Virus record (IMG/VR): IMGVR_UViG_3300023174_002543
Location: 124,001-188,000 of that record
Length of the DNA stretch: 64,000 nt
Direction: 5' to 3' (one strand)
Below are positions 3,001 to 40,825 of this stretch, one piece after another. The notes under the pieces were generated by a model. It made no database searches. It saw only the letters and a program-made list of their open reading frames with translations, and was not told the origin of the DNA. Position numbers and translations under genes: made by a program. The first letter of the stretch is position 1; every line of letters begins with the position of its first letter.

Positions 3001-6000
3001 TGCATATCCTGCATTAGGATTAACTAGTGGTACAATTTATTATTTTGTTAATAGTGCAACTAAAATCACTGGGTCAGTTGCTGGCTTGTATCAATGGACT
3101 CATGTAGCAGTAGTAAGAAACACCAATATAACTACACTATATATTAATGGCGCCGGTGTAGGTTCATTCACTGATACTACAACATATCTGCTTAATCAAA
3201 ATGTAAGCCCTCCGGTCATAGGTACATATGGTGTTACACGTGGTGGTACTGGATTTGTTGGCTATATAAGCAACGTGCGTATTGTTAATGGTACATCGGT
3301 ATATAATAGTGCGTTTACACCCCCTACTACTCAGTTAACTGCTACTCAAAATGCAGGAACAAATATCAGTCCAATTGGCTCACTAATAACTACCAATGGA
3401 TATTATAGTAATTTCTTCAATGGTTCTACAAGTCAATATTTGTCAGTGCCAGGGCAAGCCTTAGTATTTGGTACCCTACCATTTACAGTTGAAGTTTGGA
3501 TTTATACAACATCTCAAAACGGACCGGCAATTATCGATAACATGATAAGCACATCAGGTTCATATTCTATTGGACAGTGGTACTTTGCACTTACTACTAC
3601 TACAGGGTATCCAGTATTTTATTATGCAACAGGTGTTTCTACTCTTGTTACAATTACTTCTGCCATAAGTGCTCCTATCGGTCAATGGACTCATCTTGCT
3701 GCAGTAAGAACGGGCACAGGTACAAATGGATTCACTATTTACGTTAACGGTCTTGTAGGTGTAACTACAACAATAAGTGCTTCAATAGGTGCATTTAATA
3801 CAACCACTTCAAATACAATTGGGTTGATGACAAGTCCTAGAAATGCACCCGTAGCAGGATTTCTATCTAACGTAAGGGTAACAACTGGTTTAGGCGTATA
3901 TACAGGAGTATTCAGCCCGCAATTCACACCACTGACTAACACTCAAAGTATAGTAACTAGTACACAAAGTAGTTTACTAGCATTGCGAACAACTTCTATC
4001 ATTGATGAAAGTACGAATGCATTTACATTAACATCAGTTGGCTCACCCGCAACAAGTGGTAGCGTAACACCGTTCGTAACAACTAATGGATACAGTGTAT
4101 TGTTTACACCTAATCAATTCTTGGCTGCAGCCCCATTGAGTAGTATATATCAAGTGTTTACCGGGGATTTTACTGTTGAATTCTGGGCATACTGTACAAA
4201 TTCTTCAACTGTTAATTGTTTGTTTATGAATTACAATGGAACAAGTGATATCAGTTTCTACATGGGTTTTACCCCCGTTGCAGGGCAACTCAGTTATGGT
4301 GGCTATAATACATACACTACATTAAGTGCAGCAGCCACATCTGTATTGTTCAACGTATGGACACACATTGCATATGTTAGAATTAATAGTGTCGAAACTG
4401 TGTATTTTAACGGTGTCTCTGTATCAACAAGTACACGTACTTTAAACTTTGCCACCGGTACTTTATATGTTGGTATTAATCCAGCAATTGGTCAATACTT
4501 CAGCGGCTACATGAGTAATTTTAGAGTTATTAAAGGACTCGGTGTTTATACTGGTAACTTTACACCTTCTACTACCCCATTAACTACAACGCAAAGTTCA
4601 AGTACAAACATTCAAGCAATTACAGGTACGGCACCTGCAAACGGTAATAGTGTTAATTTTAATGGTAGTTCATATTTGAATACTACTGGTAATAGTCAAC
4701 TTGAATTTGGTAATAATACATATACGATTGAATTTTGGTTCTATCTTACTTCAGTATCAGTATATCAACATCTATATGATTTAAGAGGTTCCGGTCCCAA
4801 TAACATAGCATCTTATGTTTATTGCCAAACTAATGGCTCTATATATTATGGCATTGGTAGTAATACGACAGTAATACCAGGATCAAGTACTGCTGTTGCT
4901 GTACAAACATGGTATCATCTAGCGATTGTAAGAACGAGCCAATCAACCAATGGCGTTACTATGTACTTAAACGGTATAAATGTTGGTGTTGGTACTGATG
5001 CTAATACTCATTTACAGTACGGATTACGTTTAGGTGCAGCTAGTCCCTCAGCCACAGCGTTTGCTACTGGTTACATGAGTAACTTTAGAATATTGATTGA
5101 TACTGCTTTGTATACAAGTAATTTTGCAATGCCAAATAATACATTAACTGCAATAACAAACACTAGAGTACTAGCATTACAAAATTCAACCACCACGGAT
5201 GCAAGTGCAAATAATTTTACATTTACTGCAACCGGTACAGTAACATTAACTACAACAATATCACCGTATATTTATACTACTAATTGGTTGATAATGCAAA
5301 ATTCACCTACTACTGATGCAAGTATTTATAATTCAACCCCTAGCAATTCAGGCGGAGCCGTTATTTCTATAAGGTCTCCCTTTATAGTAACTAACGGATA
5401 CAGTACACAGTTTACAGGTAGCAGCCAATATATTCAAGCGCCAAGCGATGCAGCGTTTACATTTGGTACAAATGACTTTACAATTGAAGGTTGGATATAT
5501 CTAAGTACCAATACATCAACTGGTACACTTTATGATGGTAGAACTGCAACTAACTCACTTAGCCCGGTAATTTATATTGATTCCAATCGAGTATACTATG
5601 CAGTTGGTAGTACTATTGTTATTACTGGAAGTTTTATAGCGTCTGCAACTTGGTATCATATTGCAATATCTCGTTTTTCAGGTAGTACAAGTTTATATGT
5701 AAACGGTCTACAAACAAGTAACATATATGCAGATACTAATAACTATGTAATTGGCGCACCGTATATTGGTACTGGATATAACTCAAGCAACCCATTAACA
5801 GGTTATATCAGTAATATTCGTGTAGTTAAAACTGCATTGTATAATAATAGTTTTATTCAATCAACTGTACCACTAGTTGCTACAGTAGGTGGAAATATCA
5901 GTGCGATTTCGGCACTTACTGCTACTAACGGTTATTATGCTTCTGCGTTTGGCGGTGCTAACGGTCTATCAATATCAACTGTAAGTGCTATATATGCATT

Positions 6001-9000
6001 AGGAACAACATATACAATTGAGATGTGGCACTATAGAATGAGCAACACATCTGCTGGATCATTTACAAGTGCATTGATACTAGTTGGAACAACAAATCTT
6101 GGAACTGCTTGTACAGGATTCCTACTTACATACAACACCAGTGGTGTTATTAATTTCTTTGACAGTAGTAATGCCACAGTAATTAACTACGCTAATGCAA
6201 CTACTAATATACCGTTGTATACTTGGACACATATTGCTGTAGTACGAAATAGCACCACAACAGTTACATTATATGTTAACGGTGTTAGCGTTGCAACAGG
6301 AACTAGTTCAGCAACTCAAGCAACTAACTCATCTGTATTCATAGGTGGTGATACTGCTAATCAAGGTAGATTTACAGGATATATAAGTAATTTACGTATT
6401 GTTAAAGGTGTAGCAGTATATACTGGTGCATTTACAACACCCACTGGTCCTCTATCTACTATTCAATCTAGTGGTACAAATATTTCTGCATTAGTTGGAA
6501 CAGAAACAAGTTTATTAACATGCCGAAGTTCAACTATTGTGGACAACAGTACAAACAGTGCCACAAACACTATTACAAATACCGGTATAGTTGGTACAGC
6601 AATTGCTATTGGATTGTTTGGTAATAACTCCGGTGTAGTATTATTAACCAGTCAAAGTTCAACTATAGTTGATAATAGTGTTTATGCAGCTCCAATGACA
6701 AATACTGGATCAGTTCTCATTCAGCCAGTAATTAACTTGTATGCAAATAAGGGCGCAACACAATTATTAGCACTACAGACTAATAATAATGTAACATTAG
6801 ATACCAGTATCAATGCATATGCTCTTGTAAATAATGGTACTACAACTACATTGCCTGCAGCAGGATTATTTGGTACAGCAGTCGTTAATTTGTTAGCACT
6901 ACAATCATCATTGACTACTGATGCCGGTTATTATGCAACTACACTAACACCAAGTGGATTGGTACAGTTTGATGCACTATCACCTTATGCAGCACTCAAC
7001 GGTAATAGTATATTCTTTAATGGTGATAACCAATATATTCAGGCACCAAGCAATGCTGCGTTCACATTCGGCACAGGTGACTTTACTATTGAAGGTTGGA
7101 TATATCTAATTGGTAATACTAAAACGGGTACATTATATGACGGTAGAACTGGTTTAACTACAGTAAGTCCGCAAGTCTATATAAACAATAATATTGTATA
7201 CTACGCAGTTGCCAATGTTAATCGTATTACCGGACCTACAATAAATATTGCTACCTGGTATCATATTGCAGTAGTAAGAATTTCAGGCATCACAGAGTTA
7301 TTTGTTAATGGTAATCAATTTGGTATCGATTATATTGATACTAATAACTATGTTATTGGATCCCCTCTAATTGGTCAAGGTTATAATAATAGTAATTCGC
7401 TAATAGGATACATCAGTAATGTACGTGTAGTTAAAGGAACCGGAGTATATGTAAGTCGATTTATTACACCTATAACAACACTAACAAATACACAGGCCAG
7501 TAGCACAAATACAAAAGCATTAGTTGCATTACCTACTTCAGGTTATTACAGTGGTTATTTTGGTTCAACTACACAAGCATATTGTGTCGTTACTACACCA
7601 ACAACTATGCTTACACTATCAGGTAGTGCATTTACAATTGAAGCATGGGTATACTTTACTGATTGGGGAAATGTTGTTAGTCTTGTGTATGGTGCAGGAT
7701 TCTTTAGTACTGGAAACAGTGCCGGCTTTAACATTGTCTTTGCAGGCACAGTTTCTTCATATACCGGTGTAACAATATATGCAGCAAGTGGTACGGTAAA
7801 CAACTTATTTCCCTATGCTTTCCAATTAGGCACATGGTATCATGTTGCGGTTACAAGAACCATTAATGGATTATACAACGCATTTGTCAATGGAACAAAT
7901 ATAGGAAATTATACTAGTACTAGTACTTGGGTAGATCCTACAAGTCAAAGCATAGCACTTAGTTATTCGCCAAGTGCCTATTATTTCTCTGGCTTTATAA
8001 GTAATCTTAGAATTACAATGGGTCAAGCAATATATATCGGTACTTATGCATCATTTACACCAAGTACTAATATATTGACAACCACACAAAGTGCAAATAC
8101 AAATGGTAGTCCAAGTCTTGCAATTGCACAGTCAACTAGTGCCGGTTATTATAATTTAGGGTTCGTTGGTAATGCTTCACAATACTTGACATTATCTGGT
8201 GCAGGACATGTATTTGGTATAAACCCATTCACTATTGAATGTTGGGTATATGCAATAAGTTTTGCCACCAATATGCCAATAATTGATAACTTTACTAGTA
8301 ATACAGCAGGTTCATATATTATTGGTAGTTGGAGATTATATTTGAGTGCTACCAGCGGTGTACCTACTTTTATATACGCAACTAGTGTTTCTGCAACTAG
8401 TGCGTTTAGTACATTGATTGGGCCCTCACTAAAATCATGGACACATATTGCAGTGGTAAGAACTAGTGCAAGTGTTGGTGGATTTAATATATATATCAAC
8501 GGAGTATCAGGTCAAGCAAATACCCTAAGCCAATCGATTGGTGCAGTCAACAGTAATACACAAATTGGTGCAGGTAAGGATGGTTACCCATTCAATGGAT
8601 ATATTACCAATATAAGATTAACAAATGGCGTGGCATTATATACTAATTTGTTTGTACCACAAACTACACCTTTCACTGCAATACAAACGGCACAAACTCC
8701 TGTTATAAGTTCATTGTTGGCATTACAAAACTCTGTTACAACTGACGCAAGTGCGAATACATTTACATTAACTGCTACAGGTAGTCCAACTGTTAGTTCA
8801 ACCGTTGTTCCTTATATGCCAGTTACTAACGGATATAGTGTTTACTTTAATGGTTCTAGTTATGTATCATTAACCACGCAAACTGCTTTTGGACTAGGTA
8901 CAGGGGACTTTACAATTGAAGTATGGATATATCCTACTCTAAATCCTGCTAACGGTATAGGTGCAATTGCTGACTTTAGGACAGGTGCCACTGCAACTGC

Positions 9001-12000
9001 TACATCAATAAGAATTAATAATGCTAGACAACTACTGTTTTATGACGGCCCACAAAATAATGATGCTATATTTACCAATACTACTGTTGCTCTCAATCAA
9101 TGGAGTCATATTGCTTATACAAGAATAGGTAATTTAGTTACTGGATACATCAACGGTGTAGTTGCTGGATCAGTGGCAGTAACTAGTAATTTAGGATCAA
9201 CTCAACCAATATGGATTGGTAATAATCAAACTGCTGGTTATAATTTCAATGGTTACATGAGTAATTTCCGCCTAGTAAAGGGTCTAGCAGTATACACCGG
9301 TGCATTTACTCCTCCAACAAGTCCATTAGCAACTACACAAAGTTCAGGTACAAATATTGTTGCACTACCGGGTGGTAGTACTACATTCTATAATTCATTC
9401 AACGGTACTAGTCAATATTTAACTACACCAAATAATACTGCATTCTCATTGAGTGGTGGTAGTTATACAATTGAATTATGGGCATATTGGAATAACATAT
9501 CCGGCGAGCAAGTAATCATTGAACGCTTTACTGCTGCCAGCGGTCCGGGATATACACTATATAAAACCGGTGGACACCAAATTCAATTGTATGGAAGCGC
9601 CACGGTAGTAACCAGCACTAGTACACTAGTAGCCGGAACTTGGTATCATATTGCAATATCTTATAATGGAACAAACACACGTGTATTCATTAATGGAACA
9701 CAAGAAGCTACTGCCACTTTAAACATCACAGACTCAGCTTCTCCACTAGTTATAGGTTCTCGTAATAGCGGAGCAAGTGCTTTCTTCAATGGATACATTT
9801 CCAATATAAGAATAGTAAAAGGTGTTGCAGTTTATACCGGTAACTTTACAGTACCAACTGCCCCATTAACTGCTACGCAATCTAGTGGTACAAACATCAG
9901 TGCTATTACTGCAGGTCAAACTGTATTACTAACTTGCCAAAGTTCACTCATTGTTGATAATAGTGCATCGTTGGTGACATTCACAAATCCGCTTGGTGTG
10001 ACAACTACACCTACATCATTGACACCTGTCTATGTACAATTGTTAATGTTACAAAATTCAGTGAATAATGATGCAAGTGTTAATAGTTTTAATGCAGGTA
10101 TTACCGGTACTCCAACAGTTAACACTACTAACATGACATATATGCCGTTCGTTAATACTAACGGACGTAGTGTACGCTTTACAGGTAGTACTCAGTATAT
10201 CAACGCACCAAGTAATGCGGTATATACATTTGGTACAGGTGACTTTACTATTGAAGGTTATATATACTTGGCTAGCGGCACTAGTGGCACATTGTTTGAT
10301 AACAGAACCGGCGCAACAACTGTTAGCCCACAAATTTATATAACTGCAAGTACCATTAATTATGCAGTATCTGGTACAAGCGTTATAGTAAGCCCAACTA
10401 TATTCTCTAGCACATGGTATCATGTTGCCGTAGTAAGAATATCAGGCGTTACTATACTATATGTTAATGGTATACAAGCAGGTGTTTCATATACAGATAG
10501 TAATGATTATGTAATTGGTAGTCCATTCATTGGCACAGGTTTTGGCAGTAGTAATCCATTGAATGGATATATTAGTAACTTGCGAGTAGTCAACGGCACT
10601 GGATTGTATACTAATACGTTTGTTGTTCCTACTATACCATTAACTGCAAATGCAGTAAGTAGTGTTATAACTAATCTACCCGCACCAATAACTAGTAATG
10701 GATATTATGCTACTGCATATTCAGGATTAACAAGTCAATATCTATCAGTACCTGGTACACCGTTTGTATTCAGTACTAATGCATTTACAGTTGAATGCTG
10801 GGTTTACATAAATTCATTAGCCGCACAACAAACACTAGTTGATAATTTCGTAACCGGACCTAGTGGATCGTTCACGCCAAATCAATGGCAACTCTATATT
10901 ACAACTAGTGGTACAGTTGCCTTCAACTATGCAACCAATGCATCTACAGTATTGACTCCAACAACTACAACTACGGTAAGTCTTGGCGTATGGACACATA
11001 TTGCAGTAGTTAGAACAAGTACAAGTACAAATGGATTTGTAATTTATATCAATGGTATTGCAGGTGTAATTGGTACAGTAAGTTTTGGATTAGGTGTTAA
11101 CGTAACAAGTAGTATAGGTATACAAACTTATAGTAAAACATTACCTATGACTGGCTTTATAAGTAATTTAAGAATTACTAACTTGGCAGTTTATACAGGT
11201 ACGTTTACTCCACAAACTTCCCCATTATCGTTAACTCAAGTAGGTGGTAGTTCAACTAACGCAATTACCGGTACTCAAACATCGTTATTAGTATTACAGA
11301 ATACAGTTACAACTGATGCAAGTACAAATAATTTAACATTAACCGCAACTGGTAATCCAGTTATCTCACTAGTTATATCGCCGTACCCAACATCAGTAGC
11401 TAATAATTATAGTGCAAGTTTTAACGGAACTACAACGCAATATCTAATTACATCGGCACAAACAAGTTCTACATATTTTGGTACAGGTGATTTTACTATT
11501 GAAGCATGGGTGTATTTAACATCAACCCCCTCACAGAATGCATCAATTACTTGCGTTAACGCTGATTGGCAAATAAGTTGGAACGTAAGTGGTTTCTGTT
11601 TCATGCCTGACGGGTCTGTTAGAAAAGTCAATACAAATAACTTAGCAGCCATATCAAATAATACATGGTATCATGTGGCATTTACTAGACAATCAAATAC
11701 TCTTAAATCATATTTAAATGGTGCCTTGGCAATGACGGATACAGATTCTGGAAATTATACTAGTTTAAACGGTATTCGCATTGGTGCAAATAGAAGTAAC
11801 AACGTAGGATTCCCCGGATATATCAATAATTTACGTATAATTAAAGGTACTGTGGTCTATACTGGTAACTTTGCTGTACCTACAACTGCATTAGGAATTA
11901 TACAAAATTCAAGTACTAACATTTCTGCATTAACTGGCAGTGAAACAATATTATTATCTGTACAATCTAGTACAATTACTGATAATTCTCTTACTGGCTT

Positions 12001-14410
12001 TACTATAACTAATAATAGTGCTGTTACAACGACCAATAGTGTACGACCTAGTCTTTTAATAGCAGTTACTAATGGAAGTAGTGTATACTTCACGGGTAGT
12101 ACTCGATATGTAAGAGCACCAAGTAACGCAGTATTTACATTTGGTACAGGTGACTTTACTATTGAAGGTTGGGTATACTTAAATGCTGCCGCAACCAGTG
12201 GTACATTATATGATGGTAGAACAGGTGCTTCAACCACAAGCCCTCAAATTTATATTGCATCAAATGTAGTAAATTATGCAGTTGCAGGTTCTAGCGTAAT
12301 TACTGGTGCAACATTAAGTACAATAACTTGGTATCATATTGCTGTAGTTAAAATTTCTGGTATCACTAAGCTATATGTTAATGGCACACAATCAGGTAGT
12401 ACATATACCGATAGTAATGATTATGTAATTGGTAGTCCATTCATTGGTACAGGTTTTGGTAGTAGTAATCCATTAAATGGATTTATATCTAATCTACGTG
12501 TAGTTAAGGGCGTCGGTGTCTATCCTAATAATTTTAATACTTCTTCATTACCGTTTAATTCTACTCAAGTATCAGTGAGCGGTTCTGGTGTTAACACAAT
12601 TACGGGTACATCGGTTTCACTATTAACCGCGCAAAATGCAACTATTGTTGATAACAGTACATTTGCAGTTACCATTACAAACGTTGGTACAGTTGTTCCT
12701 GCAGTGGCATTTGGATTGTTCAATAACTCAGGTGTTTCGTTATTAACTGCACAAAATAGTACATTTGTTGATAATAGCGTTAACGGTGTTACAATTACAA
12801 ATACTGTATCACCTGCAGTGACTACTCAACAGTTATATGGGTTGTTTGGAACCAGCTTGACTACCCTATTGGCACTACAAAATAGTAACAGTCTAACTAT
12901 AGAAGCAAGTGTGAATGCCCTTGCGGTGTCAGTGAGTGGTGTAGCAATAATGGAAAAATCATTTAGTGCAATTGGCGGATATGTAGTACCTTCATTGTTA
13001 ACTGCACAATCAGGAAATACCATAGACAATAGCGTAAACTCATCAATATTCACTATTACAAATAATTATGCTTTATACCAAACAACTGTAACACCATATG
13101 GTGCATTAACACCGGTAGCATTATTAACTGCACAGGGTAACGTGTTACTAAGTGACGCATCTGGGTACCACTCAAATGTCAATCCAGTAGTTGCTGCATC
13201 CATAATGTCGAATACGGCTAACGTAACTATTAACACAACGCATGGGCCATTCAATAATGATGTTCCATTATTAACATTCCAAAATGCATTGGTAACCGAC
13301 TATGGCAATAACAGAACACAAATGACCACAGTTGGTTCGGGTATAGCACCAACCGATGCAAGTCCATTCAGTAGTAAATCATTGACAAGTTTCTTAGTAC
13401 CATATGGTTATAATGATATTAGTATTAGTAATACTGCAACTACGGGTAACACATATCTTCTTAATAATGCAAATATTGCATCAGCGAGCACATTACTAAA
13501 TCCGTTTGTCATCCCAACTAGTGCAGTAACTGTTTTAGCACTACAAACTAGTAATATTCTAATAGAATCTAGTATTAATAACGGAACATTTACTACTGCA
13601 AATACTACACCTACAAGCAATGCGTTTAGTCCATTCGGTACATATTATAGCAATGGAATGATTACATTGAACGTTAGTGGTACTACGTATGCCAATCTTA
13701 ATGTTACCAGTTCAACACCGGCGCCTAGCAGTACAAGTAATTATTCAATTGCAATATCATCAACTTCAAATATTGGAAATAGAGAGGTATCAGGTGGTGC
13801 TATTACTCAAGGAGCAGGATCTTTGGGATATGGATTTAGTTATGCTAATGCAAACATAGTAATTGCTGATGTTGCAAACAGTAACTTGGCAGAGTCATTT
13901 GGTAATGCTAACATAGCAACTGCAAATTATCGCATATCTTATGACGGTGCTATAACTATTAGCACTGGGTACGGATTGCCCAATGTAGGGAATCTCACAC
14001 TTAATATACTAGATAGTGCAAACATTACTTTGGATGAATCGCGGGCTAATGCAAATATAGCAAATACTAATTACTTTAAGTCCTATGACGATGTTCTTGA
14101 CAGTACAGGTTTTGGTCTACCTAATATAGGTCCAAGTAATGTAACACTATTCATTAGTAATGTAGCAGGTAGTAACTTGGCTGAAACATTAATAAGTAAT
14201 AATTTAGGTAATGCTAATTATTATCGTCAATCAGACACTATACTATCTTCTCAGGCTGTTTCAAGTTATATACCCACACCGGTTGGTGGTGTAATATTGT
14301 TAATAACATATTCATATACTGACGGTGTTCCTATTGTAGCAGCAAACGTACAAAGTGGAAGTGGAAGTGGAACATTTGCTGCCAATACACAGATTTGGAC
14401 ACAGACTTAA
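2..14410 (+). CDS. Giant LamG/concanavalin A-like repeat protein (putative tail fibre/adhesin), 5'-truncated by the window edge
   Basis: Frame is open from base 2, so the GTG at 20 is not a proven start. 19 repeats of F.G..YL...GT.DFTIE.W ... W[YT]H[IVL]A[VI]VR ... G[YF]ISN.R; extremely T/S/N/G-rich with few charged residues. Confidence 0.9.
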   Translation, partial: TVTNNNVILSTYTNPYTTMKLPFLLSAQNGYGINAGTVVRDNSIFNTSLQSTSTSYVTYMAAVSPFGVTPTLLVGQSAMQRDESINSLVPQTITTTATIMPYVTPFSGNAVAFNGSTSYITGTNLYNSLGGDFTIEFFMMAGPQTATVGGLLLGRNISWSTTNNNYYIMCSSPGGVGKNSLQTIQIYNPLISITSPVYLGLTSVCDSKWHHIAIVRINGIVKIYIDGVLDTSPFSSFANTGIWDYSNYTIGSNPNDAGSTVAQLAYNGMLSNLRIINGTGIYTGTFTPPTNNLTTSQSSRTNVVQYTSTTPSSTGYSLQFNSATGSYLTTTYSPVLSLGTNDYTIEFWHFLSGKSAANQPCLFSNANSSSAGVLNMYAGHASANVLKYQLAFNTQSVIATYITMQSVSNIIYGKWTHIALVRRSGVVYLYINGTLDSTSGLGNYSVYSSQWYIGNDVTNSALGYISGFISNFRVTNGLAVYTGNFTVPTSALTTTQSSGTNIAAITNTSLANGGAISIVASGSQYINTTMVLTTATTNMTVEAWVNFTLFPTSNTWIGGTATIFSTSGNSYSSGIHFVLGSTNIYVVITNTVYGGYAHNMVAGTWYHLAYVINNGVVTFFINGISVGSISGIPVTFGAPSYSVIGASDTSGSYGIGSIGGGSVGYISNLRVLKATALYTGNFVPSTSPLTNTQSAVTNISAITGTNTSLLLQSSATTDASANAFTLTVGGSPSVNTSVFPKFTVTNASSAYFQSNGITTQYASLRAPTATSILGTGTFTVECWIYPIPFLAATSAYQVIIDNDTASGLNAFSINPNGTIFYGLTLSTVLGTTSSLYTVKFNAWNHLALVRNVTPASSIATIYINGVAGYAGTDTTSYNGGIVRIGTQRSGITFPYTGYISNLRIVNGVAVYTSNFTTPTAPLTVTQSANINGNPSTALAINTYAGNFNGTSQYLTVPTSATANVIPLILGNSNFTIECWIYPLTSSQSTWFIDFRPTIEGAYPALGLTSGTIYYFVNSATKITGSVAGLYQWTHVAVVRNTNITTLYINGAGVGSFTDTTTYLLNQNVSPPVIGTYGVTRGGTGFVGYISNVRIVNGTSVYNSAFTPPTTQLTATQNAGTNISPIGSLITTNGYYSNFFNGSTSQYLSVPGQALVFGTLPFTVEVWIYTTSQNGPAIIDNMISTSGSYSIGQWYFALTTTTGYPVFYYATGVSTLVTITSAISAPIGQWTHLAAVRTGTGTNGFTIYVNGLVGVTTTISASIGAFNTTTSNTIGLMTSPRNAPVAGFLSNVRVTTGLGVYTGVFSPQFTPLTNTQSIVTSTQSSLLALRTTSIIDESTNAFTLTSVGSPATSGSVTPFVTTNGYSVLFTPNQFLAAAPLSSIYQVFTGDFTVEFWAYCTNSSTVNCLFMNYNGTSDISFYMGFTPVAGQLSYGGYNTYTTLSAAATSVLFNVWTHIAYVRINSVETVYFNGVSVSTSTRTLNFATGTLYVGINPAIGQYFSGYMSNFRVIKGLGVYTGNFTPSTTPLTTTQSSSTNIQAITGTAPANGNSVNFNGSSYLNTTGNSQLEFGNNTYTIEFWFYLTSVSVYQHLYDLRGSGPNNIASYVYCQTNGSIYYGIGSNTTVIPGSSTAVAVQTWYHLAIVRTSQSTNGVTMYLNGINVGVGTDANTHLQYGLRLGAASPSATAFATGYMSNFRILIDTALYTSNFAMPNNTLTAITNTRVLALQNSTTTDASANNFTFTATGTVTLTTTISPYIYTTNWLIMQNSPTTDASIYNSTPSNSGGAVISIRSPFIVTNGYSTQFTGSSQYIQAPSDAAFTFGTNDFTIEGWIYLSTNTSTGTLYDGRTATNSLSPVIYIDSNRVYYAVGSTIVITGSFIASATWYHIAISRFSGSTSLYVNGLQTSNIYADTNNYVIGAPYIGTGYNSSNPLTGYISNIRVVKTALYNNSFIQSTVPLVATVGGNISAISALTATNGYYASAFGGANGLSISTVSAIYALGTTYTIEMWHYRMSNTSAGSFTSALILVGTTNLGTACTGFLLTYNTSGVINFFDSSNATVINYANATTNIPLYTWTHIAVVRNSTTTVTLYVNGVSVATGTSSATQATNSSVFIGGDTANQGRFTGYISNLRIVKGVAVYTGAFTTPTGPLSTIQSSGTNISALVGTETSLLTCRSSTIVDNSTNSATNTITNTGIVGTAIAIGLFGNNSGVVLLTSQSSTIVDNSVYAAPMTNTGSVLIQPVINLYANKGATQLLALQTNNNVTLDTSINAYALVNNGTTTTLPAAGLFGTAVVNLLALQSSLTTDAGYYATTLTPSGLVQFDALSPYAALNGNSIFFNGDNQYIQAPSNAAFTFGTGDFTIEGWIYLIGNTKTGTLYDGRTGLTTVSPQVYINNNIVYYAVANVNRITGPTINIATWYHIAVVRISGITELFVNGNQFGIDYIDTNNYVIGSPLIGQGYNNSNSLIGYISNVRVVKGTGVYVSRFITPITTLTNTQASSTNTKALVALPTSGYYSGYFGSTTQAYCVVTTPTTMLTLSGSAFTIEAWVYFTDWGNVVSLVYGAGFFSTGNSAGFNIVFAGTVSSYTGVTIYAASGTVNNLFPYAFQLGTWYHVAVTRTINGLYNAFVNGTNIGNYTSTSTWVDPTSQSIALSYSPSAYYFSGFISNLRITMGQAIYIGTYASFTPSTNILTTTQSANTNGSPSLAIAQSTSAGYYNLGFVGNASQYLTLSGAGHVFGINPFTIECWVYAISFATNMPIIDNFTSNTAGSYIIGSWRLYLSATSGVPTFIYATSVSATSAFSTLIGPSLKSWTHIAVVRTSASVGGFNIYINGVSGQANTLSQSIGAVNSNTQIGAGKDGYPFNGYITNIRLTNGVALYTNLFVPQTTPFTAIQTAQTPVISSLLALQNSVTTDASANTFTLTATGSPTVSSTVVPYMPVTNGYSVYFNGSSYVSLTTQTAFGLGTGDFTIEVWIYPTLNPANGIGAIADFRTGATATATSIRINNARQLLFYDGPQNNDAIFTNTTVALNQWSHIAYTRIGNLVTGYINGVVAGSVAVTSNLGSTQPIWIGNNQTAGYNFNGYMSNFRLVKGLAVYTGAFTPPTSPLATTQSSGTNIVALPGGSTTFYNSFNGTSQYLTTPNNTAFSLSGGSYTIELWAYWNNISGEQVIIERFTAASGPGYTLYKTGGHQIQLYGSATVVTSTSTLVAGTWYHIAISYNGTNTRVFINGTQEATATLNITDSASPLVIGSRNSGASAFFNGYISNIRIVKGVAVYTGNFTVPTAPLTATQSSGTNISAITAGQTVLLTCQSSLIVDNSASLVTFTNPLGVTTTPTSLTPVYVQLLMLQNSVNNDASVNSFNAGITGTPTVNTTNMTYMPFVNTNGRSVRFTGSTQYINAPSNAVYTFGTGDFTIEGYIYLASGTSGTLFDNRTGATTVSPQIYITASTINYAVSGTSVIVSPTIFSSTWYHVAVVRISGVTILYVNGIQAGVSYTDSNDYVIGSPFIGTGFGSSNPLNGYISNLRVVNGTGLYTNTFVVPTIPLTANAVSSVITNLPAPITSNGYYATAYSGLTSQYLSVPGTPFVFSTNAFTVECWVYINSLAAQQTLVDNFVTGPSGSFTPNQWQLYITTSGTVAFNYATNASTVLTPTTTTTVSLGVWTHIAVVRTSTSTNGFVIYINGIAGVIGTVSFGLGVNVTSSIGIQTYSKTLPMTGFISNLRITNLAVYTGTFTPQTSPLSLTQVGGSSTNAITGTQTSLLVLQNTVTTDASTNNLTLTATGNPVISLVISPYPTSVANNYSASFNGTTTQYLITSAQTSSTYFGTGDFTIEAWVYLTSTPSQNASITCVNADWQISWNVSGFCFMPDGSVRKVNTNNLAAISNNTWYHVAFTRQSNTLKSYLNGALAMTDTDSGNYTSLNGIRIGANRSNNVGFPGYINNLRIIKGTVVYTGNFAVPTTALGIIQNSSTNISALTGSETILLSVQSSTITDNSLTGFTITNNSAVTTTNSVRPSLLIAVTNGSSVYFTGSTRYVRAPSNAVFTFGTGDFTIEGWVYLNAAATSGTLYDGRTGASTTSPQIYIASNVVNYAVAGSSVITGATLSTITWYHIAVVKISGITKLYVNGTQSGSTYTDSNDYVIGSPFIGTGFGSSNPLNGFISNLRVVKGVGVYPNNFNTSSLPFNSTQVSVSGSGVNTITGTSVSLLTAQNATIVDNSTFAVTITNVGTVVPAVAFGLFNNSGVSLLTAQNSTFVDNSVNGVTITNTVSPAVTTQQLYGLFGTSLTTLLALQNSNSLTIEASVNALAVSVSGVAIMEKSFSAIGGYVVPSLLTAQSGNTIDNSVNSSIFTITNNYALYQTTVTPYGALTPVALLTAQGNVLLSDASGYHSNVNPVVAASIMSNTANVTINTTHGPFNNDVPLLTFQNALVTDYGNNRTQMTTVGSGIAPTDASPFSSKSLTSFLVPYGYNDISISNTATTGNTYLLNNANIASASTLLNPFVIPTSAVTVLALQTSNILIESSINNGTFTTANTTPTSNAFSPFGTYYSNGMITLNVSGTTYANLNVTSSTPAPSSTSNYSIAISSTSNIGNREVSGGAITQGAGSLGYGFSYANANIVIADVANSNLAESFGNANIATANYRISYDGAITISTGYGLPNVGNLTLNILDSANITLDESRANANIANTNYFKSYDDVLDSTGFGLPNIGPSNVTLFISNVAGSNLAETLISNNLGNANYYRQSDTILSSQAVSSYIPTPVGGVILLITYSYTDGVPIVAANVQSGSGSGTFAANTQIWTQT

Positions 14411-27464: not shown

Positions 27465-28052
27465 CATATAGCGTGTATACATCGGTAACTCTAGCTTCTC
27501 ACTAAAAATCACGTTAATATTACTTTGCTTTTTAAATTCGTCTAAGTTCTCGCAAGTTCTTATATGTTCGTCTATCTTGTAGTTATTACTCTGTAAAACA
27601 AGCATACTTTTGCTCGGTAGCCTAGATAGCCATAAGTCGTACTGTTTTTGAGTTATGTGCTCGCAGCTAGTGTTTATAATGATATCGGCTGTTGTATTCA
27701 CATCTAGCATATCGCCCGTAATAGCCTCAAAGCGTTGTTCTATTTCTTCCATCTTATTCATAGCATAGGCCACTTGTTGGCAGTGCGGATCAATGTCTAT
27801 ACTACGTATTTTACTGATAGGGATATTGCTACAAAATAACAGACTAGATAATGTACCGACCCACCCGCCGTGTATATCGATAGATAATAATTCTTTATTA
27901 ATGTGAGGGCGTATAACAAATTCTAGTCTGTCTATGAGCCATTCTTTACTTTTTAACTGCCCACTCCAAAATGCATCCATTGTACGCATAGGGTTATTAC
28001 TTTGGCGTATTGCTTGCATCCAGTGATGTATGTGGTCTATGTCTATTTTCAT
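27444..28052 (-). CDS. Class I SAM methyltransferase-like protein
   Basis: IHGGWVGTL, IRSIDIDP, IINTSCEH, LVLQSNN. ATG at 28052 overlaps the upstream TGA. Confidence 0.7.
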   Translation of the reverse strand: MKIDIDHIHHWMQAIRQSNNPMRTMDAFWSGQLKSKEWLIDRLEFVIRPHINKELLSIDIHGGWVGTLSSLLFCSNIPISKIRSIDIDPHCQQVAYAMNKMEEIEQRFEAITGDMLDVNTTADIIINTSCEHITQKQYDLWLSRLPSKSMLVLQSNNYKIDEHIRTCENLDEFKKQSNINVIFSEKLELPMYTRYMLIGYRQ

Positions 28053-29659
28053 TGATTGTCCTGATATTTCTGTTTTAACCAATTATAATCATTGATTTTC
28101 ATTAGTTTTTCTTTATCTTTGCTATTACGCATTCCATATTTCTGTCCTAGTATAGCGCCGGCTAATGCATATATACCGTAATCTCTGTCTCTACCCACGC
28201 TAGTCCAGATATCTAATCTATTTTGCGTTTCATTGTCAATTTGTCCATTGATTATTCTACTAGATAATTTAACACATTCACGGAAACTACTACGCCATGT
28301 AGTAAATGGATCAACGTTAAACTTAGTAATATTGCTAACGACCATAATTGGTTCGTAATTTTTACTAATACTAGTAGTCATATCGGGTTTTTCTATATTA
28401 TAATAATTATTAAACTTCTTTAATACACTTGTTCTAGGTAATAACTTAACACCACCATACCCATATACTAAATCATTGATTGGATTAATACTACGCCAAA
28501 CACGTACACGTTCATAATCATAGAATCCCACAACATAATCAAAGTTAAACTCGGGTACTATTTCACTATCTCCATCAACTACCCAAAAATAGTCACTAGT
28601 GCATAACTTAGCGGCTTCAATATGTGCTTTATATATACCCTGTACTCCGTGAATTCGTTTTATTCTAGGGAATCGTTTTACTAGTTTATTATAGTTTTCA
28701 TCGGCTTTTGGTTCATCATAGCTAATGAATACAATATCGTATTCTGTACTAGTGGGAGTCATTAAAAACGTCTGTGGGCTACGATATATAGGCTTAACTG
28801 TTTTCTTATATTCTATGCTATCCAATGTAGAATATATGTAAGTTATTCTATGGTCATCAGTTAATCCTTTAATTAAATTACCATATATGTTTCCATAGTT
28901 TAATGGTTCTTTATTAAACTTTGCTGAAACTATATCAAACACATCATTTAAATAATCAAAATCATTAATTTTTTCAATATTAAATGTTTCTCTATGTAAC
29001 CAATGCACAGCACATCTAGCACCCAATATAGCATAGACTCCGTTAACTACATCCATACCTATATGCATCCAGTTCCATAGTCTGTCATAATTGCGCCAAT
29101 CAAGTTCGGTTAGTTTATATCTGATTTCCCCGTCATTTAAGCATAACTTAATACCCTCACGGAATCCAGCACGAAATGCTTGTAATGGGGTTTTATTAAT
29201 AACTACTGTGCTACCATATTCATTAAGTTGTAGATATTTGGTAAAGTCAAAGTCTATTTTTGTATTAGTGTTATGACTTTCCTCATGTGTTTTCATATCT
29301 AATAATAGCTGTACGGGCCATACTTTAATTCCACCGTTACCATAACATGTTCCGTTAACTATGTTTAATCCACTGTAACTCAATACGTGATTGTTTAAAT
29401 CTACATCATCCTTTAATATAATGGTTTTATCATAAAAATCATCATTGACTAGATTATCTCCGTCTACTATAATTACGTTTGATGATATATCTTTAACTAA
29501 GTTAGCAACCATTTTATGTGCGCGGTCACTGCCCTTAACTCCATGCACCCTATATACATATTTAGGGCTTATCTTAGATAAATGGTTATAGTTTTCTTCC
29601 GCATTGGGTTCATCATAACTTAAAAAAACGGTAGGGTAGTCTTTTGGGTCGAATATCAT
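28049..29659 (-). CDS. Tandem two-domain glycosyltransferase-like protein
   Basis: Two copies of VF[LI]SYDEP.A.ENY...R.HGV.G...AH...[IV]VDGD (DxD) ...NG..YG.GG[IV]K...[FW]R..FRE..KL. Confidence 0.7.
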   Translation of the reverse strand: MIFDPKDYPTVFLSYDEPNAEENYNHLSKISPKYVYRVHGVKGSDRAHKMVANLVKDISSNVIIVDGDNLVNDDFYDKTIILKDDVDLNNHVLSYSGLNIVNGTCYGNGGIKVWPVQLLLDMKTHEESHNTNTKIDFDFTKYLQLNEYGSTVVINKTPLQAFRAGFREGIKLCLNDGEIRYKLTELDWRNYDRLWNWMHIGMDVVNGVYAILGARCAVHWLHRETFNIEKINDFDYLNDVFDIVSAKFNKEPLNYGNIYGNLIKGLTDDHRITYIYSTLDSIEYKKTVKPIYRSPQTFLMTPTSTEYDIVFISYDEPKADENYNKLVKRFPRIKRIHGVQGIYKAHIEAAKLCTSDYFWVVDGDSEIVPEFNFDYVVGFYDYERVRVWRSINPINDLVYGYGGVKLLPRTSVLKKFNNYYNIEKPDMTTSISKNYEPIMVVSNITKFNVDPFTTWRSSFRECVKLSSRIINGQIDNETQNRLDIWTSVGRDRDYGIYALAGAILGQKYGMRNSKDKEKLMKINDYNWLKQKYQDNQ

Positions 29660-30423: not shown

Positions 30424-30452
30424 TTGACACTAAAAGAATTTTGATATATACT
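30424..30452 (+). promoter_or_regulatory. Sigma70 promoter at the head of the RNA hub
   Basis: TTGACA-17 nt-TATACT. Confidence 0.8.
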
Positions 30453-30527
30453 ACACACATGAATTGCAAAAGGCATAAAAACAATGCTTATTTCAAAGAA
30501 TTTTTAACCAGGACTAAATAAAAGACT

Positions 30528-30668
30528 ATGATGAATAAATCTTGTAACATGCAGAAACATAACGGACAATGGCTAACGCTAGCCATATCGTTTGTACCAG
30601 CATATCCTACAAGTATTCGCGGCGCAAATGAGTCAATCGACAATTTAAGAGGCCCGGGGACTAGGTAA
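30528..30668 (+). CDS. Putative 46-aa leader peptide (MMNKSCNMQKHNGQWLTLAISFVPAYPTSIRGANESIDNLRGPGTR)
   Basis: TAAATA 7 nt upstream (30515-30520); followed by a terminator. Confidence 0.45.
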   Translation: MMNKSCNMQKHNGQWLTLAISFVPAYPTSIRGANESIDNLRGPGTR

Positions 30669-30697
30669 CAAGTTTAACATCATAAACACATTTATCT

Positions 30698-30736
30698 AAC
30701 CCCTGGGAAACTAAAAAGTCTCAGGGGTTTTTGTTT
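30698..30736 (+). terminator. Intrinsic terminator (possible attenuator)
   Basis: 11-bp stem AACCCCTGGGA/TCTCAGGGGTT followed by a U-rich tail. Confidence 0.75.
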
Positions 30737-30764
30737 GTGTGTTGTAATAAAACAACAATGGAGT

Positions 30765-30793
30765 TTGACAACAAATGAAAAATGAATTACAAT
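30765..30793 (+). promoter_or_regulatory. Sigma70 promoter preceded by TGTTG-N8-CAACA (30740-30757)
   Basis: TTGACA-17 nt-TACAAT. Confidence 0.7.
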
Positions 30794-30940
30794 TGGTTGC
30801 TTCTGATAAGGTAAATTGGTTCAAGAATCATACTATGTCAGAGGAACAACGAAAAAAATTGATTGAAGACAAATTAAAACGTGCCTTCAAACGAGTAGAG
30901 TTAGACAGCAAAATTAAAGTTTTGCCCAAGTAATCTCAAA

Positions 30941-31063
30941 GTGGTAGTAGTAACGAGGACTACATTACACACTATAAACAGTAATAAACGGGCGGACAGT
31001 ATACATGAAATTCATGGCGACAACGTGGAAAGTAAGACTACTGGTTAGGGTATCGACCCTAAC
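30941..31063 (+). ncRNA. Candidate structured ncRNA
   Basis: Non-coding; several hairpins including GTTAGGG-tatcga-CCCTAAC. Confidence 0.4.
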
Positions 31064-31169
31064 ATAGCATCGAAAGATGCTATTCTAAAACATATTTTAG
31101 TGGAACAACTGGTACTATAACTACCTACCCACACGACTCGGGAGTACTGAATGTGTTTTAGAATAGCAT
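31064..31169 (+). ncRNA. Long-stem clamp element with alternative 5' hairpin
   Basis: 19-bp stem 31077-31095/31151-31169; ATAGCAT at 31064 competes for the same ATGCTAT. Confidence 0.55.
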
Positions 31170-31233
31170 AGTGCGAGGAAAAGAATCACACCTCCTGACG
31201 GGTGAAGTACGCACTTGACTATTAAAAACATGT

Positions 31234-31307
31234 TGGCGTATAGTGTAATGGTAACACCACAGACTTTGACTCTGTTATTCTAGGTTCGAGTCCTAGTACG
31301 CCTGCCA
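31234..31307 (+). tRNA. tRNA-Gln(TTG)
   Basis: Cloverleaf; ACAGA-ctTTGac-TCTGT; GGTTCGA; CCA. Confidence 0.93.
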
Positions 31308-32457: not shown

Positions 32458-32549
32458 GGAAAGTAATGCAGGTGGGATGGTCCGCCGACGAGCCTTGAAA
32501 ACTCGGTTCTCAGAAATGGGATGGGGTTCGACTCCTCTGCTTTCCGCCA
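32458..32549 (+). tRNA. tRNA-Ser(TGA) with 8/4 acceptor/T-stem structure
   Basis: GGAAAGTA/TGCTTTCC 8 bp; GGGG/CCTC 4-bp T-stem; long V-arm; G73; CCA. Confidence 0.85.
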
Positions 32550-32643: not shown

Positions 32644-32735
32644 GCCAGCGAGACTTGGTAGTCAGAGAGGTCTTATACACCTTTTAGCGCCAGATTAGCG
32701 TTCTTGAGTGAGTTCGATTCTCACCGCTGGTACCA
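32644..32735 (+). tRNA. tRNA with TAT anticodon (Ile, AUA reader), long variable arm, minimal D-loop
   Basis: GCCAGCG/CGCTGGT; GACT-tggt-AGTC; AGGT-ctTATac-ACCT; long V-arm; CCA. Confidence 0.8.
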
Positions 32736-33136: not shown

Positions 33137-33697
33137 ATGTCTGTTTTAGCACTAGATGTGTCAGGAGTTCCAAGACAATGGATCTCTAAAGATGACGCAA
33201 TCACCTATCATGCCAAAAATGCAGTAGCATGGGCACTAGGTGAAGTTGTAGCAAAGTATCGCGGTGGATTTCAAAAGTCCGGCGAGATGAGTTACATTGA
33301 ATCACAAAGTATAATTGCTATTAAAGGACATGGCTTCAATCCATATAAACATTCAACCGTTGCATTAACAAACAGAACATTGTTTGGTCGTGACCGGCAT
33401 GTGTGTGCATATTGTGGAGTACATTATCCGAACTATCATAATCTAAGTAGGGACCACATTGTCCCTAAATTTTTAGGTGGTGAAAACACTTGGATGAATG
33501 TGGTTACTGCTTGCCGTGAATGTAATAGCAAGAAAGGTCATAAGACATTGAAAGAATCACGTATGGAATTACTGTATGTGCCTTATGCACCTAATCACTA
33601 TGAAAACATGATACTGCAACAACGTAACATACTTGCGGATCAAATGGAATATCTGTTAGCAGGTGTCCCAAAACATAGTAGAATCTTACTATCGTAG
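33137..33697 (+). CDS. HNH endonuclease-domain protein
   Basis: RD.H.CAYCG, SRDHIVPK..GG.N.W.NVVTAC..CN.KK; AAGGAG RBS. Confidence 0.9.
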   Translation: MSVLALDVSGVPRQWISKDDAITYHAKNAVAWALGEVVAKYRGGFQKSGEMSYIESQSIIAIKGHGFNPYKHSTVALTNRTLFGRDRHVCAYCGVHYPNYHNLSRDHIVPKFLGGENTWMNVVTACRECNSKKGHKTLKESRMELLYVPYAPNHYENMILQQRNILADQMEYLLAGVPKHSRILLS

Positions 33698-33941: not shown

Positions 33942-34136
33942 ATGTTAGTTAGTGAAAACGCAGGTTATAAATTGTATTGTGAAGTTCGCAAACTTGATAT
34001 ACATCCTCAGGATAATCATGTCCGAATCTATACAACTTATGATTGGGCTAAGAACCCAGATGCTGAACAAAATAAATTAGAGTTATTCCTTAGTGATAAT
34101 GAATTAGAGGTACTTAGACAATCATTGACTGCTTAA
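33942..34136 (+). CDS. Hypothetical protein
   Basis: GGAG RBS; 64 aa. Confidence 0.7.
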   Translation: MLVSENAGYKLYCEVRKLDIHPQDNHVRIYTTYDWAKNPDAEQNKLELFLSDNELEVLRQSLTA

Positions 34137-34723
34137 TTGTTTTGTATAAACAATTGCCAGTCTTCAAAGCTATAGTGATAGTTTTCCAAAACTTCTAACA
34201 TCTTATCAAACACTAGTAATGTTCGTTTGTGACCAGCAAGTTCAGTTTGTACTTGTGTTATTTTTGTTTCAACAATAGATTTTAGAAAATTATCACCCTC
34301 ATCTTGTTTCAATTTAATTTTTTTACTGATAATGGTTAATTTTCTTATGAGTTCATTGCACATGCCAATACCCTTGGTTGTATTACGTTGTGCTTCATAA
34401 ATATCAACTTTCATCTTTAATATTAAATCATCAAGTTCAGGGTTGATTTGCTGAGTAAAATGATTTATCATATTAGAAAGTCTATTTTTGACTTCATTGC
34501 TGATATTAGTGTCCTCATAATAATTGCCGGTACTATCATAATGCTGGCGTTTTATAGGATCAATTAGTGTTTCATACGCTTCTTTGATTCGTATGAATTT
34601 TTTTTCATCACCCCCTTTGTCGGGATGATTGATTTGAGCAAGCGTTCTATATTTTTGTTTGATTTCTTCAAAGGTACAATTTTTTGGTAATTCTAATTCA
34701 TCATAAAGGGTATTGGTATCCAT
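34133..34723 (-). CDS. DnaJ-domain (J-domain) protein
   Basis: LYDELEL...IKQKYR.LAQINHPDKGGD...IKEAYETL.DP..R..YD; TAAATA 4 nt upstream. Confidence 0.9.
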   Translation of the reverse strand: MDTNTLYDELELPKNCTFEEIKQKYRTLAQINHPDKGGDEKKFIRIKEAYETLIDPIKRQHYDSTGNYYEDTNISNEVKNRLSNMINHFTQQINPELDDLILKMKVDIYEAQRNTTKGIGMCNELIRKLTIISKKIKLKQDEGDNFLKSIVETKITQVQTELAGHKRTLLVFDKMLEVLENYHYSFEDWQLFIQNN

Positions 34724-39964: not shown

Positions 39965-40825
39965 TGGGGGCATAGCCTCTTTAAGATAAGTCACGTGAGT
40001 GACCCAAAGCAGTATCCTCCTACAGGACTGCGCCAGTAATGGTCTATCTATGCAAGCCTGCTCTCACCCGCGAGGGTGCGTTCACTGATAAGACCGGTGG
40101 ATGTAACAGTAAAGCAAGTGTGTTGGAAAGAATGTCTGTTTATGTTCCCGTGAGGGTAAGACAGGCGGACAGAGAGTAACAGGTGGTGCTGACCTCAACA
40201 CAAAACCAACTTGTCAATTGGTAAGAGAAAGGGTAGTGTATTGATTCGAAGGGTCGCTCCTAAGAGTTCGTATGCAGTTTGAGTGTTTGATGGATATGTA
40301 GTAATACATATACATTGGTCGCAAAAAACTACTGATTACTCCGCGAGAGGAAAGGTACGTGGCGTGTTGTATTTTGTAGTCCAAAAGATTATGAAGCAAC
40401 TGAGACAGCACATCACAGTAGGTTGTTATAGGCTAATGGTAGGCCGATTTCCTTTTAAGAAATAGACTGTTGGTTCAACTCCAACTAACATTATAAAAAC
40501 GCAAAGTCTGTCTCGGTGGTATGTGAAAAACATCTAATACTTGAGTGGCAACACAATCAAGTCTGACGTAACTCGCAAGGTGAAATCAGTTTATGCAGGA
40601 AGTATCGTAACTACTTAGCGGTAGTGAATGGCTCTAAAGGTCAACGGTGTAGAAAGCGTAGAATAGCATATCATGTCAAGTCTAATGCCTGACTTAAAAC
40701 GGCGATGTTGGTAACAGACTAGGATATGTAGTAATACAGTCTTAGTGGAAATCAGAAGAAAGTAGGCTCGCAAGGCTTACAATAATGTCTGAGGTGTTAC
40801 TCGGTAAGCATGTATTCTCAGTGCT
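39965..40825 (+). ncRNA. Large ornate ncRNA, GOLLD-like (about 860 nt); boundaries approximate
   Basis: Long non-coding stretch inside the tRNA array with many GNRA-capped hairpins (ccc-GCGA-ggg, ccc-GTGA-ggg, gctc-GCAA-ggc, atatgta-GTAA-tacatat). Size and context match GOLLD; not tested against Rfam. Confidence 0.6.
40422..40493 (+). tRNA. CCA-less tRNA-Lys(TTT) embedded in the large ncRNA
   Basis: GGCT-aatggta-GGCC D-arm; ATTTC-ctTTTaa-GAAAT; GTTGG-ttcaact-CCAAC; weak acceptor; no CCA. Confidence 0.75.

Follow-up and report, generated by a model that had tools for sequence, protein, structure and literature searches.

A putative leader-peptide attenuator at the head of a phage tRNA gene array

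Large phages often carry tens of tRNA genes, but how such arrays are regulated is essentially unknown. What, then, is the role of a short open reading frame (ORF) and a transcription terminator that stand immediately in front of the tRNA array of a lake phage? The window analyzed here is a 64,000-nt stretch of DNA (bases 124001-188000 of the 367-kb virus record IMGVR_UViG_3300023174_002543, which is rated complete). It has about 36% G+C, an ORF of at least 4802 codons, and 33 tRNA genes on the + strand between positions 31234 and 46028; the phage is a jumbo phage from freshwater metagenomes. An initial annotation, made from the sequence alone, proposed that the region just upstream of the first tRNA gene is a ribosome-mediated attenuator, with a leader ORF, an antiterminator and a terminator. 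Comparison with relatives suggests that these phages probably gate read-through into the array by how well the leader is translated, although this function is inferred from sequence alone.

Sequence elements upstream of the tRNA array

Are the proposed elements present? They are, and the observation made in the initial annotation holds: the sequence TAAATA (30515-30520), the 46-codon ORF, the terminator, and the complementarity between the end of the ORF and the 5' arm of the terminator are all where they were described. The features of the region, all on the + strand, are as follows.

30424-30452, +: promoter P1, TTGACA-17-TATACT, sigma70 type, matching 11 of 12 consensus positions
30459-30505, +: variable 5' UTR, with a predicted start at about 30459 and a small hairpin; its length varies between relatives
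30506-30527, +: nearly invariant 5' block AACCAGGACUAAAUAAAAGACU just before the ATG
30528-30668, +: leader ORF, 46 codons plus TAA, with an ATG start
30549-30603, +: stem-loop inside the ORF (apical hairpin 30569-30586) followed by a U-rich tract; possible RNA polymerase pause hairpin
30603-30623, +: codons 26-32, peptide motif YPTSIRG
30624-30650, +: variable linker codons
30653-30659, +: 5' strand of the antiterminator outer helix, CCCGGGG
30662-30668, +: 5' strand of the antiterminator middle helix, UAGGUAA, including the stop codon (30666-30668)
30672-30687, +: apical hairpin of the antiterminator, GUUUA-ACAUCA-UAAAC
30692-30698, +: 3' strand of the antiterminator middle helix, UUAUCUA
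30700-30727, +: intrinsic terminator hairpin, whose 5' arm (30700-30708) includes the 3' strand of the antiterminator outer helix (30701-30707)
30728-30737, +: T-run TTTTTGTTTG
30765-30793, +: promoter P2, TTGACA-17-TACAAT, overlapping the start of ORF2
30775-30933, +: ORF2, a conserved small protein of 52 aa of unknown function
30934-31233, +: conserved structured non-coding RNA stretch before the first tRNA
31234-31307, +: tRNA-Gln(UUG), the first of the 33 tRNA genes

The full terminator hairpin pairs AACCCCUGGGA (30698-30708) with UCUCAGGGGUU (30719-30729), with 9 core pairs at 30700-08:30719-27, and is followed by the T-run. CCCGGGG at 30653-59 is complementary to CCCUGGG at 30701-07, giving 7 pairs with one G.U. 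One element requires correction. TAAATA is not supported as a −10 element; rather, it is part of an almost invariant block, CAGGACUAAAUAAA, 8-13 nt before the ATG, and a conserved sigma70-type promoter (P1) lies upstream. A match of at least 10/12 to this type of promoter is found within 140 nt upstream of the leader ATG in all 64 distinct upstream contexts, and the distance from the −10 element to the ATG is 18-77 nt.

Is the region related to anything already described? Nucleotide searches of public phage records, for near and distant matches, found only tRNA-Gln matches. A protein search with a 536-aa neighbor found one Ralstonia jumbo phage and was not informative for the leader, and a search for related loci using the 232-aa upstream neighbor returned nothing. 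Searches of Pfam, PHROGs and a protein atlas gave no family or fold lead for the leader peptide and nothing usable for ORF2, for which there was only a weak hit to phrog_12198. In a search of 30440-31240 against Rfam, the best hits were far below threshold (SpF39 with 26.6 bits against 60, His_leader with 16 bits against 49), there was no T-box hit, and no family matched the leader or the structured stretch at 30934-31233.

Relatives were instead found in metagenomes. A word-based protein search with the 46-aa product found 13 clusters of 38-57 aa at 66-91% identity, and their contigs were retrieved. Since finding relatives in this way favors intact ORFs, the viral contig collection was also scanned with four DNA patterns anchored on different parts of the element: an ORF-internal block plus the ORF end, the ORF-internal block alone, the non-coding 5' block plus the start, and the non-coding block after the stop plus the terminator arm. 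Together with the window, this gave 66 distinct full-length versions from freshwater phage contigs (individual sequences are referred to below by L-numbers). A scan of genome contigs gave one true hit, on a 13.5-kb contig binned into a lake Neisseriaceae MAG, plus two chance hits; the element has no bacterial home. It is single-copy in the phage genome.

A conserved reading frame and two competing RNA structures

There is evidence in support of translation of the leader ORF. First, the frame is open from the same ATG(ATG) to a TAA in all 66 distinct versions, regardless of which coding or non-coding block was used to find them. Second, all indels within the ORF are multiples of three (+3, −3, +6, −6, +9 and others), whereas the 31-nt spacer after the stop has several 1-nt indels. 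Third, pN/pS is 0.44. Fourth, the motif (Y)PTSIRG is kept in loci found through the 5' block alone, with synonymous variation at the Pro, Ser, Arg and Gly codons, and no RNA pairing accounts for its conservation. The ORF is therefore inferred to be translated, with part of its peptide sequence under selection. One point weighs against this: there is no Shine-Dalgarno motif at the spacing usual in this genome, which is mostly 5-7 nt, and the AGGA in the 5' block lies 14 nt from the ATG. The codons between the peptide motif and the antiterminator are variable, such that the distance from IRG to the stop is 11-18 codons and that from IRG to CCCGGGG is 19-35 nt.

The motif CCCGGGG, in the last codons of the ORF, is kept as RNA, not as peptide. 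One large clade (L049, L050, L056, L062, L063 and L067-L085) reads GGCCCGGGGA in a different frame, giving ..A/T-R-G-T-E* instead of ..G-P-G-T-R*, yet it keeps the nucleotide motif and places a TAA 7 nt after it, where the other clade places the TAA 6 nt after. Across the 66 sequences, the spacing from the G-run to the stop is 6 nt in 43, 7 nt in 21, 15 nt in one (L058, which has an extra G in the G-run and stops 9 nt later), and 24 nt in one (L089). Hence, what is conserved is an RNA strand together with the position at which the ribosome would stop relative to it, as predicted for a ribosome-operated switch. This is the strongest single argument for such a switch.

Does the antiterminator form? 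Folding of the nascent RNA from the ORF end to the terminator loop gives a composite hairpin that is larger than the one initially proposed, with the outer helix CCCGGGG:CCCUGGG, the middle helix UAGGUAA:UUAUCUA that contains the stop codon, and a small apical hairpin in which most relatives have a matched 1-nt deletion on both strands. This is the minimum-energy fold in 63 of 66 sequences, with a mean of −20.1 kcal/mol against −14.5 kcal/mol for the terminator hairpin. At least 6 pairs between the ORF end and the 5' arm of the terminator form in 63 of 66 versions, which is more than chance, as only 35% of controls with a composition-matched shuffled ORF end do the same, although composition alone does give this result in that 35%. 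On 30640-30733, the antiterminator conformer is −24.3 kcal/mol and the terminator conformer is −22.1 kcal/mol. The middle helix is compatible with both, so the real competition is between CCCGGGG and the 3' arm of the terminator for the 5' arm.

Conservation of this complementarity with compensatory change in related phages had been named beforehand as a test, and both were found. On a MAFFT alignment not fitted to the structure, 89.9% of cells are paired, 33 cells are changed on both sides, and the covariation score is 0.124 against a mean of 0.082 in shuffles (0 of 500 as high) and at most 0.066 when partners are slid. On an alignment fitted to the model, 91.2% are paired, 40 cells in 6 pairs are changed on both sides, and the score is 0.147 against 0.088 in shuffles (0 of 500 as high) and at most 0.069 with slid partners. 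The sequences are related, meaning that these counts are not independent events. Fitting did not repair a one-column offset of the clade with the 7-nt spacer; the 18-19 “unpaired” cells at two outer-helix pairs in both alignments are alignment artefacts, and those sequences pair fully in folds. Individual cases are also informative. For example, C30654:G30706 becomes U:A in L002 and, independently, in L051/L055, where the ORF end, UCUCGGGG, is an exact copy of the 3' arm of the terminator. In the middle helix, pair types AU/GC/GU, GC/AU and GU/AU are seen at three positions; in the other-frame clades G30664:C30696 becomes A:U and A30663:U30697 becomes G:C, and the helix is GGAAUAA:UUAUUUU or GAAUAA:UUAUUC. 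L066 has CCAGGG:CCCUGG, and the divergent L089 has a different helix of 7+6 bp, CCAGGGGUUCAUA:UAUGAAGCCCCUGG. In both L089 and L058, the stop lies further from the outer helix. Chance complementarity next to an ordinary terminator remains conceivable, because G/C-rich terminator arms often find partners nearby, but it is very unlikely given that the pairing is conserved in 63-65 of 66 versions, that compensatory changes occur in several lineages, and that the motif is kept across two reading frames.

The terminator itself, a G+C-rich stem of 9-11 bp, is similarly well supported. In the alignment, 98.4% of cells are paired, C:G changes to A:U in 16 sequences, and the G.U pair is resolved to G-C or A-U in others. 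At least 6 T are found in the 8 nt after the stem in 57 of 66 versions, whereas the other 9 have only 3-4 proximal T.

Other pairings were considered. The stem-loop inside the ORF covaries, with a score of 0.160 against 0.103 in shuffles (0 of 500 as high) and 63 cells changed on both sides. By contrast, a trp-like 1:2 pairing of the IRG codons with CCCGGGG shows no covariation (0.042 against 0.039) and was rejected as unsupported. The 5' block and start codon (30508-30548) are complementary to the block after the stop (30665-30706), with 88.6% of cells paired, but no pair is changed on both sides and the score equals that of the shuffles; this long-range helix is retained only as a possibility for the released RNA, which it may silence.

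Genomic context and the proposed mechanism

The downstream context of the element is constant. A same-strand tRNA array starts 340-1540 nt after the stop in all 54 distinct downstream contexts tabulated, and none of 69 upstream contexts has a tRNA within 4 kb. The upstream genes differ from relative to relative and lie on either strand. Between the terminator and the array lies P2, 30-60 nt after the terminator, with a match of at least 10/12 in 53 of 59 distinct downstream contexts, including the clade that lacks ORF2. The caveat in the initial annotation that a separate sigma70 promoter follows the terminator is thus correct and important, since the array does not depend on read-through. ORF2, a conserved protein of 48-55 aa, has no promoter of its own upstream of its start, and P2 transcripts would begin inside it; it is the gene whose expression should depend most on read-through, and it should be expressed only from P1 transcripts that pass the terminator. 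The stretch between ORF2 and the first tRNA is strongly structured (z = −3.97).

How might the element work? We favor a ribosome-dependent transcription attenuator, with somewhat better than even confidence that ribosomes operate the switch as described; confidence that the two competing structures and the ORF are real and under selection is high. In this model, host RNA polymerase starts at P1 and transcribes a translated leader. The antiterminator is transcribed before the terminator is complete and is at least as stable, so a leader with no ribosome, or with a lagging one, would let the polymerase read through into P2, ORF2, the structured RNA and the tRNA genes. A ribosome that keeps pace and reaches the stop codon would unwind the outer and middle helices, freeing the 5' arm to pair with 30719-27, and transcription would end at about 30733. 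The direction of the effect is argued from geometry: the stop codon is 32 nt before the terminator stem, and with a ribosome footprint of about 15 nt on either side, a ribosome at the stop cannot cover the terminator but must melt the antiterminator. For the same reason, a pyrBI-type logic, in which the ribosome shields the terminator, was rejected. Since no 1:2 pairing is supported, an untranslated leader is predicted to read through. The covarying hairpin inside the ORF, with its U-rich tract, could pause the polymerase until a ribosome arrives. The likeliest place for a programmed or conditional stall is (Y)PTSIRG, where a held ribosome would leave the antiterminator free. The comparative data establish the conservation of the ORF, both alternative structures and their covariation, the placement of the stop codon inside the antiterminator, the position at the head of the array, and the two promoters; translation itself, control of the outcome by ribosomes, the direction of the effect, any stalling and its site, and the signal that is sensed are inferred.

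The interpretation in the initial annotation is therefore only partly supported. The leader ORF, the terminator, the antiterminator and the position at the head of a tRNA array hold in the relatives examined. TAAATA does not hold as the promoter. Of the suggested stall sites, which remain hypothetical, Trp15 is invariant, but the PAYP prolines are only partly conserved and the “GP” is read in another frame in one clade. The suggested coupling of tRNA supply to translation speed is, given P2, at most a modulation of the P1-derived share.

Public expression data give no functional evidence. Runs that contain the stretch come from lake and freshwater metagenomes, and three metatranscriptomes and one doubtful run hold only contig fragments of relatives. 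One contig bridges the terminator (30625-30880) and others lie on 30947-31098, but DNA carry-over cannot be excluded, and neither ends, strand nor levels can be read from them.

Two alternative mechanisms deserve mention. A possible, although less favored, one is a stand-alone small gene, in which P1, the ORF and the terminator make a functional micro-protein, a stable ~275-nt RNA, or both, while P2 drives the array and the hairpin around the stop codon serves mRNA stability, translation termination or silencing of the released RNA. The unit has its own consensus promoter and terminator, with a second consensus promoter directly following; (Y)PTSIRG and the N-terminus are conserved as amino acids, which ordinary leader peptides are not; and the complete RNA folds significantly better than shuffles (z = −3.25), with the start codon paired to the region after the stop. 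However, a covarying structure that competes with the unit's own terminator is hard to explain unless termination is modulated, the element was never found away from the head of a tRNA array, ORF2 has no promoter of its own other than read-through, the long-range pairing does not covary, and the peptide has no family or fold lead. An unlikely alternative is that the switch is real but is set by a phage or host RNA-binding protein, or by a tRNA, with the ORF translated only incidentally. The two conformers are nearly isoenergetic, so any ligand that stabilizes one could decide the outcome, and the invariant 5' block and the internal covarying hairpin could be binding sites. Nevertheless, the stop codon stays 6-7 nt after the outer helix in 64 of 66 sequences, even where the frame differs, which points to the position of the ribosome as the constrained quantity; moreover, no T-box, riboswitch or leader family matches, and there is no conserved neighboring regulator gene, because the upstream genes vary.

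What are the implications if the model is correct? A conserved, compact and easily mutated module of about 310 nt (a promoter, a 46-codon leader, an antiterminator and a terminator) stands in front of the array in a whole group of uncultured freshwater jumbo phages, and both of the region's promoters are sigma70 consensus. If translation of the leader sets read-through, this would be the first leader-peptide attenuator found to control stable-RNA genes, and a direct link between the translational state of the infected cell and the phage's own supply of tRNAs. A more speculative possibility, which we consider doubtful, is that the leader encodes a new arrest-type sensor peptide with the core (Y)PTSIRG, and that stalling is set by the state of the translation apparatus, such as elongation capacity or the supply of Arg-tRNA(ACG). 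This would hold the ribosome short of the antiterminator and open P1-driven transcription into ORF2, the structured RNA and more than 30 tRNA genes, a phage-encoded feedback loop in which translation quality controls tRNA supply. The conserved motif may then add a member to the small set of natural ribosome-arrest sequences. The invariant Arg31 codon is CGY, and tRNA-Arg(ACG) is the first tRNA in 21 of 53 arrays (Gln(UUG) is first in 28) and the second in 11 more, but this is a curiosity rather than evidence.

Comparison with known systems

How does the element compare with systems already described? Full-text literature searches found no description of a leader-peptide attenuator in front of phage tRNA genes. 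The architecture is that of ribosome-mediated attenuators of amino-acid operons (trpL, hisL, pheL, leuL, thrL; Rfam leader families), with which it shares a short leader ORF inferred to be translated, an intrinsic terminator before the downstream genes, an antiterminator that shares a strand with the terminator, a stop codon placed so that a terminating ribosome would block the antiterminator and end transcription, and a possible pause hairpin inside the leader. It differs from them in having no run of regulatory codons, no supported 1:2 anti-antiterminator (making the circuit simpler than that of trp, in that an untranslated leader should read through rather than terminate), a leader peptide conserved as amino acids, carriage by a phage, a second promoter after the terminator, downstream genes that are tRNAs, a small ORF and a structured RNA rather than biosynthetic enzymes, and no sequence or structure match.

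Arrest-peptide sensors (SecM, TnaC, ErmCL/ErmBL, MifM) are similar in that the amino-acid sequence of a short ORF, rather than only its codons, is conserved, and in that the stall position would decide the fold of the downstream RNA. The amino-acid-level conservation of (Y)PTSIRG, 19-35 nt before CCCGGGG, suggests a nascent-chain effect. The motif ..PTSIRG(S/T/A).. shares the IRG core with the SecM arrest motifs HAPIRGSP and GIRAGP (PMC12526060). SecM-type motifs end in R-(A)-G-(S)-P, with Pro-tRNA in the A site, whereas the residues after IRG are S/A/T/N/Y/L and then N/D and so on, without the essential final Pro. The resemblance is a lead, not evidence of homology, and the output would be intrinsic termination rather than exposure of a Shine-Dalgarno sequence (SecM, Erm) or blocking of Rho (TnaC). 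In antibiotic- or proline-responsive leader-ORF attenuators, such as the mgtCBR leader ORFs (PMC3641672), translation of a leader ORF likewise chooses between alternative stem-loops that control transcription into the downstream genes, but here the context is different, the sensed signal is not known, and there is no homology. Lastly, the tandem promoters of bacterial stable-RNA operons (rrn P1/P2) also place two consensus promoters in front of stable-RNA genes, which allows one regulated and one basal input. Here, however, a leader inferred to be translated and a terminator lie between the two promoters, whereas bacterial rrn operons rely on Nus-factor antitermination rather than on a leader peptide.

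Elements from the leader to the first tRNA gene

30549-30603 (+), stem-loop inside the leader ORF, with its apical hairpin at 30569-30586
30765-30793 (+), consensus promoter P2
30775-30933 (+), ORF2, encoding a conserved 52-aa protein
30934-31233 (+), conserved, structured non-coding stretch

The stem-loop inside the leader ORF covaries among relatives and is followed by a U-rich tract, leaving open the possibility that it serves as a transcription pause site. Further downstream, P2 overlaps both the ribosome-binding region and the first codons of ORF2, so transcripts from P2 should start inside ORF2. P2 is kept even where ORF2 is lost. The stretch between ORF2 and the first tRNA is strongly structured (z = −3.97), and its sequence blocks are shared by all relatives, including the clade without ORF2. 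No Rfam family matches this stretch, while metatranscriptome contigs of relatives lie on 30947-31098. It is a candidate new RNA associated with the head of the array.

RNA and protein genes within the tRNA array

32458-32545 (+), weak tRNA-Sec-like match
32644-32735 (+), weak tRNA-Sec-like match
33137-33697 (+) and 34133-34723 (−), an HNH endonuclease gene and a DnaJ-domain gene
40359-40824 (+), GOLLD RNA (Rfam RF02032)
40422-40493, tRNA-Lys

The HNH endonuclease and DnaJ-domain genes are interspersed among the tRNA genes. The GOLLD RNA (201 bits, against a threshold of 150) also lies inside the array, with tRNA-Lys embedded in it. The two tRNA-Sec-like matches score only 31–33 bits, against a threshold of 47; the second is the 92-nt gene that ARAGORN calls tRNA-Ile(UAU), whereas the first is not called by ARAGORN.

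Other genes, and the leader on a binned contig

2-14410 (+), open reading frame of at least 4802 codons that runs off the start of the window
28049-29659 (−), gene for a 536-aa protein

The same leader plus a tRNA array sits on a 13.5-kb contig (L103) binned into a lake “Neisseriaceae bacterium” MAG, with the leader at 2686-2787 (−) and tRNAs at 758-2368. This is either a mis-binned phage contig or a weak hint to the host. The 536-aa protein has a weak glycosyltransferase-2 hit, and its only relative in the phage records is in Ralstonia jumbo phage RsoM2USA, at 39% identity.
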